A stretch of DNA of 64,000 nt from positions 434,001 through 498,000 of the forward strand of contig OZ251253.1 in the NCBI GenBank assembly GCA_965240325.2. Reading direction: 5' to 3'. Shown here in pieces: positions 7,401-36,938 of the stretch. Below the pieces are notes generated by a model. That model was given only the letters and a program-made list of their open reading frames with translations, ran no database searches and had not been told where the DNA came from. Source of the DNA: Rebecca billardiae RCC1528. Its lineage: Eukaryota > Protista > Haptophyta. The translations under genes were made by a program, and so were the position numbers. The first letter of the stretch is position 1. Each line of letters opens with the position of its first letter.

Positions 7401-10400
7401 GAGGGCCCGCAGCCCACCGGCGTGCCCGTCTTCACCGTCGAGCCAAAGTCGCTCAGGCTCGGCCGCGACGAGACCGCCGACATCACCGTGACCGCGCGGC
7501 CGGAGGTTCCCGGAAACTTCGCCGACGTGCTCGTCGCGACGATCCAGGGCAACCCGACGCCGGTGACGTTCGCGGTCTCGGCGATCGGCACGTGGCCGCG
7601 CGCCGCGCTCTCCGCCCCCGCGCTCGAGTTCGAGCGCATCCTCGTCGGACGCTCCGACACGCGCCGCACGACGCTCATCTCGCGCTCGGCGCTGCCGATC
7701 TCGTGGTCGCTGGCGGAGGGCGAGCTCGAGCGGCTGGCGCGCGAGGGGACGGTGCCCGGCGCCGCGCCGCCGCCGCCGCCGCCGCCGAGCGGGAAGGGCG
7801 CGAAGGGGAAGGGCGCGGAGAAGGCGCCCGACCCCGCCGCAGCCGCCGCAGCCGCCGCGCCCGCCTCGTCCGAGCCGCCGCCGCCGCAGCTCCCGGACTT
7901 TGTGATCACGCCCACCTCCGGCACGCTCGAGCCGTTCGGCACGGCGGAGCTCTCGGTCACGTTCCGCGCGCGCGCGAACGCCAAGCCTTCGACGGTGGTG
8001 ACGCTGGATGTGCAGGACGCGTCGGGGCTGTGCGGCGTGCGCCAGCGGCTGCCCATCTCCTTCTCCGCCGAGGGGTACTCCGTCGACCTCGCCCCCGTCT
8101 TTGGCGGCGGCGAGGATGGCGCGTACGATGGCCTCGACTTTGGCACGTTCCGCGTCGTCGACGAGCGCAAGGCCACGTTCGAGATTGCGAACACGGGCGG
8201 GTACGAGGTTGGGTACGACGTGCGCTTCAAGCGGCGCGCGCTCGCGAGCGTGCTCCAGATCGCGCAGATCGTGCCGCCGCCGCCCGACGACGGCGGCCCC
8301 GCGCTCATCCCGCCCGGCGGGCGCGTGACGCTCGAGGGGGTCTTCAAGTGCGAATCCGAGATTGCAATCACGGACGCGATGGACGTGCGCGTGCACTTCG
8401 CCGAGCCGCTGACCGGGGAGGCCCTCTCGGACCTGACGCTGCCGATCCGCGTGCGCGCGCGCTCGGTCTTCTCCAAGTACGCCCTCGTCCCGTCGCGCGG
8501 CGTCTCCTTCGGCCCGCTCTTCGTCAAGACAGAGCGCACGCGCACGTTCGAGCTGTCCAACGCGGGCGAGTTCGAATTCTCGTTTGCGATCCGCGGCGTG
8601 GGTGCGGACGACGACACGCCGCGCACGGCGGCGGCGGCGGGGCGCCGCCCGTCCAAGACGGCGGCGCGCTCCGAGCCCACCATCTCGGGCGACACGCTCA
8701 CCGTCGGCCCGTTCACCGTCACGCCGTGCGCGGGCAAGCTCGAGTCGGGCGCGTCGCAGACCGTGACGGTCAAGTTTGTCGCGCCCGCGCACGCCGCGAG
8801 CTTCGTCGAGGCGCTCACGGTGGACGTGAGCGAGCGCGACCCGTCGGACGCGCCGGGCGGGTACCGCTTCGAGCTGGTCGGCGAGTCGTGCATCCCCGGC
8901 ATCGCCACCTCCAACTGGGCCGAGATCTTCGAGGAGCAGGCCGTCGTGCGCGAGCTCGAGCTCGGCGCGGACTCCGTCCGGCGTAACGTGTTCGCGTCCG
9001 CGCCGCGCGTCTTCTCGTTCGGCTCGCACGCGGTCGGCGCGGACGTGGCCGAGCGGATCCGGATCACGAACCCGATCAAGGTGACCGCGCGCGTCAACCT
9101 CGCTGTCAAGCCGCACGCCTCAGGTGGCGGCGGCGCCACGGGCGGCGGCGGCGGCGGCGCCGCCGCCAAGAAGGACGCGGCGGGCGCGGCCGCGGCCGCC
9201 TCCTTGCTGCCGTTTGATGTCGAACCAAAGCAGCTGGTCATCCCGCCGCATGAGCACCGGTACGCGACGCTGTACTTTGCGCCGCGCGCGATGCAGCCGG
9301 CGCGCGCCGACTTCGAGGCGACGGTGGAGGACGGTACGGACCCCGCGACCAACAAGCTCGCCTTCGAGCTCTTCGCCGAGGGGACTCTGCCGCACGTGAC
9401 GGTGGTGGCGCCGACGGCGCGCGACGACGACGGCGCGCCGGCGCTCACGTTCGCGCGCGCGCTCGTGGGCAAGCGCTCGGTGAAGCCGATCCGCGTGCGG
9501 AACGACGGGGTGTTGCCGGCGCAGGTGCGCGTCTTGCTCAAGTCCGGCGCGCCGCACTTCGGCCTGCAGCCGCCGCTCGCCGCCTTCACCGTCGTGCCGC
9601 GCGGCGAGGAGGCGGTGGAGGTCGAGTTCGCGCCGACCGAGGCGGCCGACGAGCTGCGCGGCGCCGTGCTCATCTCGGTGAACGGCAACTCGTTTGAGGA
9701 GCATGTCGTCTCGCTCGGCGCGTCGGCGTACGCGGCGGACGTCGCGTTCGACGACCTGCCGGACGGCGAGAGCTTCCCCGACGGCCTCGGCTTCGGCGAC
9801 GTCGCCGTCGGCGAGCGGCGCGAGCTGTCCTTCACACTCGCAAACTTCACGCGCGAGCACCGCCGCTTCGCGTTCAAGCCGCCGCTCGCGCCGCCGGCGG
9901 ATGGGAGCGTGGGCGGCGCGGCGCTGCGCGCAGTGACCTTCTCGCCCGAGCTCGGCCACCTCCCGCCGGGCGGGCGCAAGCGCATCGTCGCCACGTTCAG
10001 CTCGGACGAGCCAGTCCGACTGAGCGAGCTCGAGGCGCGCTGCGTGCTGCACGCAATCGCGCTCGGCGGCGGCGGCGGCGGCGGCGGCGCGATCTCGGAG
10101 TGGGACTCGTCGATGTACACGGTGCGCTTCGTGCCGCGCGAGGAGGTGGAGGCGGCGATGGAGGCGCACGCGGCCGCGCTCGCCGCCGCCGCCGCCGCGC
10201 CCGCCGCCGCGCCCGCCGCGGCGGCGGACGCGGCCGCGGCGGGCGCCGCCGCGCCTGCGGAGCGGCCACCGCCGCCGCCGCCGCCTCCGTTCATCCTCGC
10301 GCCGGACCAGCCCGCCGGCGACGGCCCGCGCAAGGTGCGCGAGCGTGTGCCCGAGCCGGCGTTCGCCTACACCGCCGACGCCGCGCCCGCGAGCGCCGCC

Positions 10401-30353: not shown

Positions 30354-31727
30354 CTACGACGCCTTCGCCGCGCCCCCGGCGGCGCTCGGCGCCGGCGCGT
30401 CGCCGGGCGGCGGCTCGGTGACGAACGCGGCCGCGTCCTCAAAGGCCAGCGCCTCGAGCACCGCCTCGGGCACGGCGTCGATGGTGCCCACGACGGTGGC
30501 GCAGAGGAGCCCGCCGAGCACGGCGATGGCGAGCGTGGTGAGCAGCGCGAGCGCCTCCGCGCCCGCGCGCCCGCCCTCGCCCATCGCGCCGAGCGTGATC
30601 GTCGCCACCAGGCCACCAAGCACGCCGGGCATGCCGTGGAGCGAGTGGACCCCACACGTATCGCGCAGCCCGATGCGCGCCTCGAGGAAGGGGCCGATCT
30701 TGGTGAAGCCGACGGAGGAGAGGGTGCCCGCGCACAGCCCGACGAGCAGCGCGCCGCCGGGCGTGACGGGCAGCACCACCGCCGAGCCGATCCCCACGCC
30801 GCCCGCCAGCGTCGCGTTCTGGATCAGGACCATGTCCAGCTTGCCTTCGTGCGTCAGCAGCGGGCTCAGCCCGAACGTCGCGACCGTCGCGGCCGAGATC
30901 GAGACGACGGTGTTGCACACGGCGGTGAAGCGCGCCGGCCCGGCGATCGCCGCGTTGAACGAGGGCCACAGGATCCACAGGAACAGCGTGCCCACCATGC
31001 TCGTGATGTCGTTGGCGTACTCGGCGCCGTTCTTGCGGTGCTCCGCGCCGACGCTCGGTTTGTTCGAGTAGAGTCGGTAGGTGGCGGCGAGGCCGAAGTA
31101 GGCGCCGAAGGCGTGGATGCCGAGCGAGCCGCCCGCGTCGGTCGCGCCCATCCCGCCGTACAGCCGCTCGATGCACAGCGCGTCGTTCAGCACGTACAGC
31201 GGCACCTCGAGCAGCAGCAGCAGCGCGAGCTGCGCCGGCGACGCCTTGCCGATCAGCGCGCCGTACGAGATCATGGCGGCGCCTGAGGCGAAGAGGCCCT
31301 GCGTGAGGAGCTCGACGTTGAGCTGGATGAACTGCGGGCCCTGCGTGAAGTCCGCCCGCGGCCACTGCTCCACCGCGCCGAACACGAGCACCGCCTCGAG
31401 CATCACGAGCACGGACAGCCCAAAGTTGAGCGCGACCGCGCCCATCGAGTAGCGCTTGAGGAAGGTCATGAGGAAGCCGAAGCCGATGAAGATCATGATC
31501 GAGACGTGGATGAAGTACGAGTACATCTCCTCCACGTCCTGCTCCGCCTCGTCCGCGTACCGCACGAACACGCCGAAGCAGACCAGAAGCAGGGACGCCG
31601 CGCCGAGCACGATCCGGCTGAAGCCTGCCAGCGGCCACTCGGGCTGCGAGGCGGCGGAGGACGGGTTGTCGGGGTCCATGAGCGCGTGCGTGTCCTTGTG
31701 CGCGGTGTACTCGCCCGACGGTGCCAT
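30354..31727 (-). CDS. Rhesus (Rh)-type ammonium/CO2 channel, Amt/Mep/Rh family, intronless
   Basis: Rh signatures HVSIMIFIGFGFLMTFLKRY, DAGGSLGIHAFGAYFGL, GTLFLWILWPSFN, IQNATLAGGV and DTCGVHSLHGMPG; both pore histidines present. Confidence 0.94.
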   Translation of the reverse strand: MAPSGEYTAHKDTHALMDPDNPSSAASQPEWPLAGFSRIVLGAASLLLVCFGVFVRYADEAEQDVEEMYSYFIHVSIMIFIGFGFLMTFLKRYSMGAVALNFGLSVLVMLEAVLVFGAVEQWPRADFTQGPQFIQLNVELLTQGLFASGAAMISYGALIGKASPAQLALLLLLEVPLYVLNDALCIERLYGGMGATDAGGSLGIHAFGAYFGLAATYRLYSNKPSVGAEHRKNGAEYANDITSMVGTLFLWILWPSFNAAIAGPARFTAVCNTVVSISAATVATFGLSPLLTHEGKLDMVLIQNATLAGGVGIGSAVVLPVTPGGALLVGLCAGTLSSVGFTKIGPFLEARIGLRDTCGVHSLHGMPGVLGGLVATITLGAMGEGGRAGAEALALLTTLAIAVLGGLLCATVVGTIDAVPEAVLEALAFEDAAAFVTEPPPGDAPAPSAAGGAAKAS

Positions 31728-32074
31728 TGTCGAGCCGCACGCGCCCATCCACGGGCTGTCACGGCCGAGCGACGGCGATCGACGACGGCCGAACGACGAA
31801 CACGCGCCGTTCCGACCGACCGGCCCCGCGCCGATCTCAGCTTTCGGCCTGAGAACGGGCACTGGAACCGCCGCACGCAGCCGCGGGCGCGGGCCTGAAC
31901 TCCGAGGACACCCAAGCAGACCGAAAGCTCGCGCGTTGTCGACAGATCCGGCCGCATCATCATCGCCGTCCGCCCGGGTGCATAGCAGGCTCCCGCCCGT
32001 CCGAGCCTGGGCATCATCGTCCGCATCACCCCGGAGGGCGCCCCCGGCACGCGCAGCGCGCGCCCACCGCGGAG

Positions 32075-35000
32075 CTACCCAAAGTCGGCGTCGGGATCGG
32101 CGGAGCGGCTGTAGGGCAGCTGCGCCGCCGACGGGTCGACGCCGAGCGGCGGCGGCTGCGGCCCACCGGCGGCGGCGGGTCCCGGAGGCTCTCCCGGCGC
32201 GCGCCGCCGCGCGCGCGCGGCGATGTACTCGCGCTCGAACTCCTCGACTTCGTCGGAGAGCGCGTCGGAGAGCGCACCGCGCCCCACGGGCGCCGCCGCC
32301 CCCTCGCCGCCCGCCCCGCCAAGCCCACCCCTGCGCTGCTGCTGCTGCTGCCCCTCCGAATCATCCCCCAGTGTGATCAGCAGGTCTCGGACGAGTCTGT
32401 ACGCGGACGCGCGGCGCGCGCGCGGGTTCTTGCGAAGCTTCTCGCGGAAGGCGAGGAGCTCGCGGCGCAGCTCCACCTCCTACACGTGCGCGGGGCCGAG
32501 GGCGGGCGGCGGGAAGGGGGGCGAAGGGACGCCGCCCGTCAGGAGTGCGGCGCTTGCAGGCGCGCGGCCACGAGCGAGCGCGCGCGCGTGCGTGCGGCGC
32601 GCGCCCCGACCGCGCCGCCTCGCGCAGCGGGCGGCGGCGGCCCGCGCGGGCCGGCGGGGCGGGTTGTGGATGGGCGCGCGTGCTCGCCGCCCCAGCGCGC
32701 GCACCGCGGGCGTGAACGTCCCGTCAAAGTTCGCGTCGAGCAGGTGCCTGCTGGTCGTGCTGGCGAGCAGGCTCATCCGGTCGAGGAAGATCTCGAGCAA
32801 TCTCGCGCACTCGATCGAGTTTGTCTCCTCTGCGTCGGACATGGGGACCAGTGTGAGCTGCGGCCAGAGGTCGGAGAGGAAGGGCCGCTTGTGCAGCGTG
32901 ATCACCGTGCCGATCTGCGGCGCGGGCGGCTCGGGCGGCTCGGACGCCCCGCCGCCCTCCGCCGCGCCGCCGCCGCCTCCGCCACGGCGCGCGCCGCTCT
33001 GGCCTGCGGCCGCCGGATCGGCGGCCGGATCCGCCTCCGCCCCCGCCCCCACCGACGGGCCGGCTTCGGCGCGCGGCGCGTCTTGCGCGCCGCCGCGGGG
33101 CGGGGCCGCCGCGCCCGCGGCAACGTCGGCCACGCCGTGCGCCTCGACGCCCGAGCCCGGCGCGTGCGGCTGCGCGCTCAACTCCGCCGCTTTCAACTCC
33201 GCCGCGCCGCCGCCCGCCGCGCCCGCCCCTGCGCCCCCAGCCACCGCCACGCCGAGTGCCGGCGCGCCGCCCGAGCCCGCCGCGCCGGCGAGCGCCTTGT
33301 TCACGGTCATCGCGACCTTGTGGAAGTTCTCGTCGCGCAGCGAGAAGCCGACGAAGAGCATGTGCTTTGTCATCAGCATGGTCTGCACGATGCCTGCGCC
33401 GCCCGCAAGTCGGGCGCGGCGCGCGCGCTCGCACCGAGCTCGGCTCAGCCGCGGCAGGCGCCGCGTCGCGCGCGCTCGCCGGTGCCGTGCGAGTGGGGCG
33501 GCGCGGCGGGGCCGGGCCGGGCGCGCGTGCGACGGGCCGCGCGCGCGCACCGGTGAGCGCCTGCCGCCTGTCCGGGTACTCGTTCATCTGCGTGCGCGTG
33601 AGCACGATGTCCTTCGGGTGGTGCACGCACCCATGCAGCTTTAGCAGCCAGCGCTTTGGGCGCGCGCCGCCGCCGACGCCGCCGCCGCCCGCCGACGGAT
33701 GCCGCTGGCCGCGGGCTCCCGGACTCTCGTCGTCGTCGTCCTCCTCCGCGGGCGCGCCGGGCGCGGGCTCGTCCGCGCCGAGGCGCAACGCCTCGAACGG
33801 TGGCGTGCCTCCTGTCGACGGCGCGCGCCGAGCGCCGCCGCCGCCGCCGCCGCTCCCGCCGCCCACCACAGCGCCCGCCTCATACGGCAACACGGTGTGC
33901 CCGATACCGGCGCCGTCGCAAGCGAGCTCGAACAGGTCGTCGTAGTTCGTCGTGACGTAGCCGTCCACCGGGAGCGCGGCGAGGAGGGAGTGCACCAGCG
34001 AGTGGCGCTCCGTCTGCGGTGTGGCGGCGGCGCGGCGCGCGCGGCCGCGAGGGGTCAGTTGTGAGCGCGGCGCGGCGTGCACGCGCGCACGACACGCGCG
34101 CCCCGGCGCGGCTGCAGCGCGCAGCGCGCAGCCGGTGCCCAGCTGCGTGCCGTGCGCGCGGCACGTGCGTGTGTGCCGCTGGCTGGGCACTGCGTGCCGC
34201 TGCTGGCTGGTGTGTGTGCCACGGCTCAGTGGCTAGGGTTAGGGTTAGGGTACGGGGGTAGGGTTGCGCCGCTCGCTGGGCGGTGCGGCGCACCTGAAGC
34301 TTAAGGACGACCGCGCGCTGCAGCGCCTCGGGCCCGCCGAGCCTGCGCTCGAGCACCAGCGCCTGGTCGAGCACGGAGAGCCGGCTGAAGCCCCGCACCT
34401 GCAGCGCAGCCGGGCGAAGCACGGCACGGCACGTGAGCACAGCGCAGCACAGCGCAGCACAGCGCAGCACGGCGCGGCGCGCCCGCGCGCCCCGCTGACG
34501 CGTGCGCGCGCGCGCGCGTGCCGTCGCGCCGGAGGGGCGGGGACGCTCGGCTCGCGGTGGGGCGCGCCGCCCCGCGGCACGCCCGCGCGCGCACCTCCGC
34601 GGGCGTCATCCCGATCGTCACCGCCAGATTCCGGAGGAGGTGCACCCAGTCCGGGAGTCCGGTGCCAGCGGAGCAGCCTGCGCCCATGAACAGCGCGAGC
34701 TGGCCGTCGGTGGCGAGGCGCGCGAGGCGGTGCGCGGCGCGGAGGTGCGCGGCGGAGAGGCAGCGCCACTGCCGCGCCGCGAGCGCCGCGTCCTCCTGGC
34801 ACAGCTTCCGCCGGCACGCCTGCGCCGCTGAGAACATTCTCGGCGTCTTCACGACGAGCGCGACGTCAATAGCGGAAGTGTCCGCGAAAGCGTACAACCG
34901 GCGGAGGAGGGAGGAGAGGATGTCGCCCGAGGCGCAGCGCGCGTTGCGCGGGCCGGTGCCCACCACGGGCAGCGCGAGCAGGTACCGGTGCCGCCCGTTC

Positions 35001-35626
35001 CGCGGCTGCGCCGGCGAGCCGCGCAGGTCCGCCTCGGCGGCGCTCAGGAATTGCTCGGCCGCGGCTAGGAACCAGGAGAGTGGCGTGTCAGGTCCGGGGA
35101 CGGGGGCGTACTTGGAGTTGAGCTGGCCGAGCCAGATGGCGGGCGCGTTGCTCGGGCGCACGCCCGACAGCCGCTGCACGCGCCGCTCCTCGCTGAACGC
35201 CGCCGGCGGCACCACCTGCGCGCCCTCGGGCGGGCCGCGCGGGAACCAAGCCGGGTTGTGGATGTCGCGCGTCGGGTAGAGTACGGCGTCGCACGCGAGG
35301 CGGCGGAGGTCGCCCTGCACGACGAAGACGTGGCCGGGCGCCGCCGAGCTCGACGGCGGCCGCTCCATGATCTCGCCCGGGCTGTCGAGGCTCGCGCCGC
35401 CGTCGTCGTCCGCGCCGCGCGCGCCGCCGCCGCCCGAGCCCGCGGCGCGCACCGCGCACCGCGCGACGGCGGCACGCGGGTGCGCGGTGCTCGCGGGGCG
35501 GCGTGGGCCCAGCGGCGCGGCGAGGCTGTGCTCCACGCGCGCCACCGAGCCGCCGGCGCCGCCCCACGCGCACGCCGCGACGAGCGCGAGTGCGAGCGGG
35601 CGCCATGGCGCCGCGGCGCCGCCCAT
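32075..35626 (-). CDS. Macrodomain-like + SIR2_2 (sirtuin-like NADase family) fusion, ~897 aa. Exons 35626-34595, 34398-34294, 34013-33551, 33393-32705, 32479-32075
   Basis: Four GTGCGC..YAG introns splice into one frame. SIR2-like motifs LALFMGAGCSAGTGLPDW, VTTNYDDLFE, LLKLHGC...DIVLT and HMLFVGFSLRDENF. Macro-like motifs VFVVQGDLRRLACDAVLYP and LALPVVGTG. Hydrophobic signal plus Arg/Ala-rich leader. Confidence 0.86.
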
Positions 35627-35783
35627 GCTGAGCGCGCGCGACTTCGAGAGCCGACGAGGGCTGTTGACGACTCGCAAGGAGGACTGTATGACGTTACGAC
35701 CTCGTTTCGCCCGATTTGTCTGCTGAGAAAGTTCTGATGATTCATCGCGGTGGGCGGCTCCGGAGGCCACGCGGCACCGCAAG

Positions 35784-36938
35784 ATGGTTCGGCCGCCGCC
35801 GCAGCGGAGCAAGGAGGCACTGCGCCGCCGCGCGGAGAAGCGGGGGCGCACGCTCGAGGAGGAGCGGGCGCACGACCGCGCCAAGCTGGAAGAGGTCGCG
35901 CGGCTGAACGCCGCCGCACGCAAGAAGGGCGGCGCGCGACGCGAGAGCGGCGGCGGCGGCGCCGACGCGCGCGCAGAGCTGTCGACGCTCAGCGAGCACG
36001 TGGCGGAGGGCGGCTCGCAGCTGGTGGGCCACACGGTGGTCTGCCCCGACGGCCGGCTCGCCAAGGTGCTCTCCGTCTCCCCGCCCGACAGTTCCTCCGC
36101 CACCGCCGCCCCCACCCTCGCCGTCAAGCTCCGATACGAGGGCGGCGCGCGGCCGGAAGGCGGCGGCGGCGGCGGCGGCGGCAAGCGCAAGCGCACGCTG
36201 GTGGTGGAGCTGCCCGGACAGCCGGACGCGGGCAGCGCCAGCACCGTCGGCGGCGGGTACAGGCTCGCCGAGGGCTCGGCTCCCGACTGGACCTGCCCCG
36301 CGTGCGGCTTCGTCAACTTCTCGAACCGCGTCGCATGCAACGGCTGCCATGCGGCCAAGCGCCCCAGGGCGGCCGACGGCGGCGGCGGCGGCGGCGGCGG
36401 TGCGCACGGTGGCGGCGCCGGGGCGGCTCGCGCCGCGGGGCGCGCGGACGCGGAGGATGCGCGCACCGAGCGCCGCGCCAAGCGGCCGAAGCCAGCCGCC
36501 GACCCCTCGCGCGCCTGGGAGGGCTCCGAGGTCGACCCGAAAACGCTGGCGGCGAATTTTGCGCTGCGCGCGCAGTACGCGGCTGACCCGGCCGCACTGA
36601 GCGCAGAGGACCGCGCGCGCGCGGAGGTGCTGCTCGCGCGGGACGAGCGCAAGAAGGCGAAGAAGGCGGCGCGCCGTGATGGCGGGGGCGGCGGCGCTTC
36701 GCTCAAGTGGCGCGTGCGCGCGCCACCGCCCGACCCAGGCCCCGGCCACGGCGGGCGCGGCGGCAGGGGCAGGGGCAGGGGCGCGGCGCGCGGCGCGGCG
36801 GCTGGCGGCGGCAGGGGCCGCGGCGGGCGCGGAGGGCGCGGGCGTGGTGGCGCGGGCGGTGGGCGTGGCGGCGCTGGCGGCGGGCGCGGCGCCCGGCGTG
36901 GCGGGCAGGCCGGCCCAGGGCGATCGAGCTCGGGCTAG
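35784..36938 (+). CDS. RanBP2-type zinc-finger protein with C-terminal RGG tract (putative RNA-binding)
   Basis: DWTCPACGFVNFSNRVACNGC fits W-x-C-x2-C-x3-N-x6-C-x2-C; RGG/GRG repeats at the C-terminus; basic NLS-like stretches. Confidence 0.8.
   Translation: MVRPPPQRSKEALRRRAEKRGRTLEEERAHDRAKLEEVARLNAAARKKGGARRESGGGGADARAELSTLSEHVAEGGSQLVGHTVVCPDGRLAKVLSVSPPDSSSATAAPTLAVKLRYEGGARPEGGGGGGGGKRKRTLVVELPGQPDAGSASTVGGGYRLAEGSAPDWTCPACGFVNFSNRVACNGCHAAKRPRAADGGGGGGGGAHGGGAGAARAAGRADAEDARTERRAKRPKPAADPSRAWEGSEVDPKTLAANFALRAQYAADPAALSAEDRARAEVLLARDERKKAKKAARRDGGGGGASLKWRVRAPPPDPGPGHGGRGGRGRGRGAARGAAAGGGRGRGGRGGRGRGGAGGGRGGAGGGRGARRGGQAGPGRSSSG

Follow-up and report, generated by a model that had tools for sequence, protein, structure and literature searches.

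The 64,000-nucleotide stretch of DNA analysed here (the window) is taken from contig OZ251253.1 of the haptophyte Rebecca billardiae RCC1528 (positions 434,001 to 498,000). On its minus strand, at 35626..32075, it carries a Macro-SIR2 gene of five exons and four introns, whose 897-aa product begins with a leader, continues through a macro domain and a SIR2_2 domain, and closes with a helical C-terminal tail. On balance we favour the view that this is an intact nuclear gene, a clade C sirim of bacterial Macro-SIR2 descent, in which a ligand of the macro domain would gate hydrolysis of nicotinamide adenine dinucleotide (NAD+) by the SIR2 domain. Judged by analogy with better known SIR2 effectors, a ligand-gated NADase is the most likely functional reading. 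Defence-type SIR2 NADases offer a clear example of immune machinery that bacteria and eukaryotes have in common and, to our knowledge, only the vertebrate FAM118 branch of the eukaryotic ones has been studied experimentally. With its clean gene model, predicted catalytic Asn402 and His506, macro domain and leader, the locus opens the Macro-SIR2 branch to experiment in an alga preyed on by giant viruses.

The initial annotation of the window had proposed a five-exon gene, and splicing exons 35626..34595, 34398..34294, 34013..33551, 33393..32705 and 32479..32075 indeed yields a 2694-nt reading frame whose only stop is the terminal one. The modelled junctions can be compared with the best homologue, P0001 (65% identical), whose gene lies on the genomic Logan contig L081 (13.6 kb, 69% GC). 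Against model residues 97-575 this orthologue reads in a single frame, gapless at junctions 344/345, 379/380 and 533/534, while at junction 763/764 it shifts frame over a 151-nt gap at exactly the same residue. The relative thus lacks introns 1-3 and has intron 4 in common with the window gene, so that sequence comparison supports all four exon junctions. Identity to the orthologue is 81% after the exon 4 insert and 64% for residues 764-808, which it encodes in another frame 151 nt downstream.

A defence-type SIR2 domain behind a divergent macro domain

All the motifs on which the initial annotation was built are present in the spliced product (GDLRRLACDAV at residue 105, LALPVVGTG at 217, GAGCS at 315, TTNYD at 400, KLHG at 504 and FVGFS at 547). 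For domain searches and structure prediction, the spliced protein was represented by its exon pieces, the stop-free open reading frame (ORF) region and its homologues. The Pfam SIR2_2 model (PF13289, cut-off 24.5 bits) matches the exon 3 piece at 40.3 bits and the exon 4 piece at 24.5 bits, and scores 72-144 bits on homologues. PADLOC profiles of the ThsA SIR2 protein match, in collinear succession, the last part of exon 1 and then exons 3 and 4, and these matches are confined to the SIR2 part of the profile (positions 11-220 of 478). Matches to the PADLOC models PDC-S25, LmuA, Dsr1 and Dsr2 were dismissed as generic SIR2 matches, and the family is not a PADLOC-2023 system.

Comparison of family profiles with the Protein Data Bank (PDB) places the SIR2 domain closest to ThsA (7UXT at E 2.9e-35, 6LHX at 8.3e-32; ThsA range about 1e-28 to 1e-35), with DSR2, KomC and related SIR2 NADase chains next (about 1e-22 to 1e-28). 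FAM118B reached only E 7e-6, and the best canonical sirtuin, sirtuin-7, only 0.13 against 1.6e-28 for ThsA; the canonical SIR2 family of Pfam (PF02146) was matched neither by the window pieces nor by homologues. Since the ThsA, DSR2 and KomC matches lie far above those to sirtuins, membership of sirtuin classes I-IV or class M (SirTM), or of the canonical sirtuins, is refuted. A compact two-domain structure was predicted for the 50%-identical homologue P0002 (residues 115-681; predicted local distance difference test score, pLDDT, 92.4; predicted template modelling score, pTM, 0.93), and its top 50 structural matches in the PDB are all KomC, ThsA or DSR2.

The TTN and KLHG motifs of the family align with N112 and H152 of BcThsA, which correspond to Asn402 and His506 of the window protein, and the N112A mutant structure 8BTO shows Ala at the aligned Asn position. 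Eleven cysteines occur in the 897 residues; neither a C..C pair, CxxC included, nor a Cys4 zinc ribbon was found anywhere among them. By its sequence, then, the SIR2 domain is of the bacterial-defence or ThsA type, with the predicted catalytic Asn and His intact and without a zinc module. In all these respects (defence-type catalytic residues, lack of CxxC, separation from canonical and class M sirtuins) the first description of the gene holds up.

The N-domain (residues ~97-290, at 34757..35338 on the minus strand) matched no Pfam, NCBIfam or PADLOC model. Its recognition as macro-like comes from two other directions. A profile of 87 N-domains of the family reaches the macroH2A1.1 macrodomain at E 3.8e-7, aligning GDLtrlaCDAwLlPT with GDLTEVRCDAVVHPT and LALPvVGtG with IAFPSIGSG. 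Independently of homologues, the AlphaFold2 model of the window's own N-domain (pLDDT 92.8, pTM 0.90) retrieves only macrodomains among the top 50 Foldseek matches in the PDB, and VIA-align superimposes it on a macrodomain bound to ADP-ribose (ADPR) with Z 15.8 over 165 residues at 2.9 Å. In the AlphaFold DB, the uncharacterised proteins R1DA46, R1DBG3 and R1C6F2, the 1082-aa B-box protein A0A0D2U2P1 and a bacterial 'SIR2 family protein' rank above ordinary macro proteins. As far as the predicted fold can tell, the identification of the N-domain as a divergent macro domain of three-layer alpha/beta/alpha fold is sound, as the initial annotation had supposed.

The macroH2A1.1 macrodomain (7NY6, 1YD9, 1ZR3) is the only macro class reached by the sequence profile, with GDL..CDAvv.PT and lAfPsiGsG aligned and a fold match of Z 13-14. 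Identity between the two is 16-17%, and they differ in that the N-domains of the window family carry an additional insert behind strand 2 and are joined to SIR2 instead of a histone. The Asp of the CDAV motif and the G-T-G are conserved across the family, and the likeness to macroH2A1.1, which is non-catalytic, favours a binding over a hydrolytic role. We infer that the macro domain is a non-catalytic binder of ADPR or a derivative, which appears to keep the adenine-contacting Asp and the G-x-G phosphate loop.

Bacterial relatives, clade C sirims and known systems

An exhaustive HMMER search returned 710 representative relatives, mostly of ~510-540 aa, in which the N-domain occupies residues 2-180 and is followed by SIR2_2. 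At least 474 bacterial loci encode the family in one-genome-per-species data, mainly in Myxococcota, Planctomycetota and Actinomycetota, and a related bacterial cluster in the Atlas is labelled Macro+SIR2_2 by Pfam itself. A maximum-likelihood tree built from 91 full-length proteins joins the window protein to P0001 (support 100). The window protein belongs to a 13-row eukaryote-type clade (Shimodaira-Hasegawa-like approximate likelihood-ratio test, SH-aLRT, 100; stem length 0.51) that is nested among bacterial rows, the tree being rooted at its midpoint only. The eukaryotic branch goes back to single-gene Macro-SIR2 proteins of ~520 aa that are widespread in bacteria, which is the ancestry that the initial annotation had suggested.

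The fusion itself is not new, contrary to what that annotation implied. A published survey of SIR2 proteins (Bonhomme et al., bioRxiv 10.1101/2024.09.18.613514) separates sirtuins from 'sirims', and describes a clade C of eukaryotic sirims from 83 species, combining SIRim with Macro, that branches with ThsA-like bacterial sirims. Members listed in their Table S4 include Diacronema sp. CCMP2436 P011225, Pavlova gyrans, Emiliania huxleyi, Chrysochromulina and Capsaspora; the window protein's own peptides are not in that table. Our top homologue in the search, P0015 (E 6.5e-69; 63% identical to the window N-domain), equals Diacronema P011225 in its leader and N-domain. Clade C sirims have the same macro plus SIR2_2/SIRim architecture as the window gene, which has introns and eukaryotic neighbours. 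On the grounds of architecture, of the match to P0015 and of its place in the eukaryote-type clade of our own tree rather than that of the authors, the window protein is a clade C sirim. The eukaryotic Macro-SIR2 fusion is thus already catalogued, and the window adds a well-annotated member, not a new kind of system. For this clade the published account describes neither gene structure nor leader, inserts or function. Counting bacterial and eukaryotic members together, the Macro-SIR2 branch is large, catalogued but uncharacterised.

Among characterised systems, the closest solved SIR2 domains are those of ThsA from type I Thoeris (6LHX, 7UXT, 8BTO), a SIR2-SLOG NADase in which GAGxS, TTNYD, KxHG and FVGFS are aligned with the family. 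Both proteins carry a sensor domain and SIR2 in one chain, but the sensor of ThsA is a C-terminal SLOG/STALD domain whereas that of the window protein would be the N-terminal macro domain; the Pfam STALD family was not matched in the window or in homologues. Type I ThsA is accompanied by a ThsB/TIR gene, whereas TIR is not among the listed commonest neighbour families of the bacterial Macro-SIR2 homologues. The type II Thoeris effector, ThsA of TM-Macro form, has a macro sensor of an ADPR-derived signal (His-ADPR/ADPR/IAD; PMC11204291), like the macro sensor proposed here, but possesses transmembrane helices and no SIR2 domain. A type II ThsA macro chain is absent from the nine profile matches listed to E 10 and from the 50 structural matches shown per search. 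Human FAM118B and FAM118A (SIRal/SIRanc, clade A sirims) resemble the window protein in being SIR2_2 proteins of eukaryotes that lack a zinc module and go back to bacterial defence (PMC12700824), but they match it weakly and have no macro domain. FAM118 and clade C are independent acquisitions in the published tree (bioRxiv 10.1101/2024.09.18.613514).

In bacteria, 384 neighbours clustered around 80 loci contain no family common to more than eight loci, and the commonest neighbour family, Ser/Thr kinases, accounts for 5 of 102 immediate neighbours. A Thoeris-like operon was rejected on these grounds together with the lack of TIR among the commonest neighbour families; as no neighbour recurs, the bacterial proteins look like stand-alone units. 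Individual members have additional features. In Polyangium (L005:4120-11906, and likewise L011, L012 and L061) the end of a 1294-aa Ser/Thr-kinase-AAA_16 gene overlaps the Macro-SIR2 gene by 4 nt (8001-8004) and a gene for a patatin-like phospholipase lies downstream, so that the three may form a conflict module. A metagenomic bacterial protein of 870 aa (P0124) continues after Macro-SIR2 into a C-terminal PD-(D/E)XK nuclease (PDDEXK_13 / REase-ARP), a second effector on the same sensor. Within the eukaryote-type clade, P0006 and P0038 end in a C-terminal EF-hand pair (weak Pfam matches below the curated cut-off), hinting at a calcium input in that branch. A viral carrier of the gene was also considered and rejected: a scan of IMG/VR gave only generic SIR2 cores (~30% identity over residues 328-422), and Macro-SIR2 was not found there.

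Residues 1-86 (35369..35626, minus strand) form the leader, delimited by hydropathy and homologue comparison, in which a hydrophobic segment at about residues 10-21 (Kyte-Doolittle maximum 2.3 at 10-20) precedes an Ala/Arg/Pro/Ser-rich stretch. Nearly all Met-started homologues of the eukaryotic clade have a leader of 35-130 aa with an N-terminal hydrophobic segment; bacterial homologues start straight at the macro domain (GHVFVV). In algae with secondary plastids, proteins bound for the plastid carry bipartite leaders, which this arrangement resembles. This signal- plus transit-peptide-like composition suggests a secretory or plastid route. In the searchable text and supplementary tables of the published survey (bioRxiv 10.1101/2024.09.18.613514) a leader of the eukaryotic clade is not mentioned, and it is one feature for which we found no earlier report.

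Proposed ligand gating and its alternatives

In the mechanism that we propose, the macro domain would bind ADPR or an ADPR derivative, and binding would switch on the SIR2 domain allosterically, possibly through a change of oligomeric state as in ThsA, after which the activated domain would hydrolyse NAD+. Gating by the macro domain is suggested by the analogy with SLOG-gated ThsA and the macro-gated effectors of type II Thoeris. As a partner gene is lacking beside the bacterial homologues, the ligand may be ADPR itself, so that the product would feed forward, or a metabolite from enzymes encoded at other loci. In the alga, the leader would place the action of the protein in, or via, the secretory or plastid route. 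It is even conceivable, but in our view unlikely, that haptophyte-type Macro-SIR2 is sent by its bipartite leader into the plastid or endomembrane system, where a defence-type NADase would control NAD(P)+ or ADPR signalling. Were this so, the protein might, for example, shut down the plastid in viral infection or stress, unlike all characterised SIR2 effectors, which act in the cytosol. An immune or cell-death role of the protein is plausible by analogy.

Several points weigh against a ligand-gated immune NADase. Both Pfam families named in the initial annotation were searched for, and only SIR2_2 was found; Macro (PF01661) matched neither the window N-domain nor its homologues. In the window protein, P0001 and P0002, Asn replaces the second Gly of the GTGxGG motif, which is kept by 90% or more of the family; with Asn at this loop position, ligand specificity or binding could differ. 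Around the 80 bacterial loci there is no recurrent defence partner, and the 102 immediate neighbours have no TIR family among their 25 most frequent Pfam families. Five of these loci, all actinobacterial (L060, L064, L072, L076 and one more), have a Nudix/NrtR-type (winged helix-turn-helix) regulator of NAD metabolism within 2.3 kb of Macro-SIR2. Because homologues lie outside Thoeris-like operons and some lie beside NrtR, analogy is what connects the family with immunity. A literature search for 'Macro-SIR2' found no paper, and no functional study of the fusion surfaced. Finally, the case of FAM118B indicates that eukaryotic SIR2_2 proteins need not be strong NADases (PMC12700824).

Some of these observations would suit a housekeeping or stress enzyme of NAD/ADP-ribose metabolism that regulates or consumes NAD(P)+ or ADPR in the plastid or the lumen of the endoplasmic reticulum. 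Conservation of the leader across the eukaryotic clade is what one would expect of an organellar enzyme, and the NrtR genes and the lack of a conserved defence partner or TIR gene among the listed neighbour families of the bacterial homologues point the same way. We nevertheless regard this explanation as improbable, given that proven antiphage NADases are the nearest relatives of the SIR2 domain, that one homologue carries a PD-(D/E)XK nuclease typical of conflict systems, that the Polyangium gene sits between kinase-AAA_16 and patatin genes, and that the SIRim subfamily as published lies in defence-enriched neighbourhoods (bioRxiv 10.1101/2024.09.18.613514). More doubtful again is a writer-eraser pair in one chain, in which the SIR2 domain would ADP-ribosylate a protein or nucleic acid, with the macro domain removing the mark again or hydrolysing O-acyl-ADPR. 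Macro-linked sirtuins act so in SirTM operons (PMC12700824), and the fold of the N-domain also matches hydrolytic domains of the MacroD/YmdB type. But the SIR2 domain shows no likeness to SirTM or canonical SIR2, as the gulf between the sirtuin-7 and ThsA matches makes plain, and the one macro class reached from the N-domain by sequence is macroH2A1.1, which is non-catalytic, with 'DAV/W-L-PT' aligned to 'DAVVHPTN'. Hydrolytic macrodomains carry an NAAN-type motif, which was not seen at the matching position of the window family.

That the gene is no gene at all, being bacterial contamination, a pseudogene or a set of chance ORFs in GC-rich DNA, is an explanation to which we give hardly any credence. 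The window is ~75% GC throughout and consequently has long ORFs in every frame, so that spurious ones are to be expected, and the available sequencing runs lend no junction-spanning support. However, four spliceosomal-type introns break the conserved domains and restore the frame exactly, an orthologue ~62-65% identical exists in another eukaryote-type contig with one intron shared, and all catalytic and structural motifs are intact. The gene is also flanked by genes for an Rh/Amt-type transporter and a RanBP2-type zinc-finger protein of the same composition, which marks the locus as host DNA and not a contaminant. Taken together, the artefact is effectively refuted, and a nuclear gene for a macro-gated NADase continues to be the reading that we prefer.

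Exons, introns and neighbouring genes

The coding region (32075..35626, stop TAG at 32077-32075) was delimited by spliced translation and tblastn, and all its parts lie on the minus strand. Candidate start codons are the ATG at 35626 and that of Met87 at 35368. Its motif-bearing pieces are four ORF pieces joined at GT..AG sites. Exon 1 ends, at 34595..34756, with a linker helix and the start of the SIR2 domain, whose GAGCS Rossmann motif aligns with GAGLS of ThsA (PADLOC ThsA profile positions 18-52). Exon 2 (34294..34398, residues 345-379) encodes a helical insert of the SIR2 domain that is collinear with P0001 and other homologues without a gap at either junction. The SIR2 core lies in exon 3 (33551..34013), the source of the stronger SIR2_2 match, with TTNYD at 33939-33953 and KLHG at 33630-33641. 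Exon 4 (32705..33393), which gives the second SIR2_2 match, holds the FVGFS strand and the conserved C-terminal portion of the SIR2 domain, and exon 5 (32075..32479) a conserved helical tail, recognised by its match to the orthologue and collinear with bacterial C-termini, followed by a low-complexity C-terminus. Two Gly/Ala/Pro-rich stretches, at residues 426-498 (exon 3, 33657-33875) and 568-692 (an Ala/Gly-rich insert of 125 aa, recognised by composition, in exon 4 at 32918-33292), are largely missing from the L081 orthologue and are therefore best seen as lineage-specific low-complexity expansions.

All four introns open with GTGCGC and close with CAG or TAG, in agreement with the host-style introns and Ala/Gly insertions noted at the outset. 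Introns 1 (34399..34594, 196 nt, GTGCGC..CAG), 2 (34014..34293, 280 nt) and 3 (33394..33550, 157 nt, phase 1) are absent from the orthologue, and intron 4 (32480..32704, 225 nt, GTGCGC..TAG) has a position common to both. The difference in intron presence thus lies between 34014-34594 and 33394-33550 in the window and one continuous frame at L081:6289-7566. Intron 1 contains four copies of the 10-nt unit AGCACAGCGC (96% matches) at 34436-34475, and intron 2 contains three copies of telomere-like TAGGGT (CCCTAA on the coding strand) at 34234-34251, a repeat to which an unrelated environmental sample contributed short contigs of very great depth. Three sequencing runs from one sample, of unknown kind, gave a single identical 220-nt contig in exon 1, in addition to pile-ups on both the telomere-like and the 10-nt intronic repeats.

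No second copy or paralogue was found when the model was searched against the window by tblastn, which matched only its own exons. The downstream neighbour is an Rh/Amt-type ammonium transporter ORF (30354..31862, minus strand; Pfam Ammonium_transp E 2.8e-52), and the upstream neighbour a divergent RanBP2-type zinc-finger gene (35784-36938, plus strand); base composition is uniform across the Macro-SIR2 gene and both of them. Between the ATG of Macro-SIR2 and the zinc-finger gene lies a gap of 157 bp (35627-35783), a short, less GC-rich patch that is probably a bidirectional promoter.

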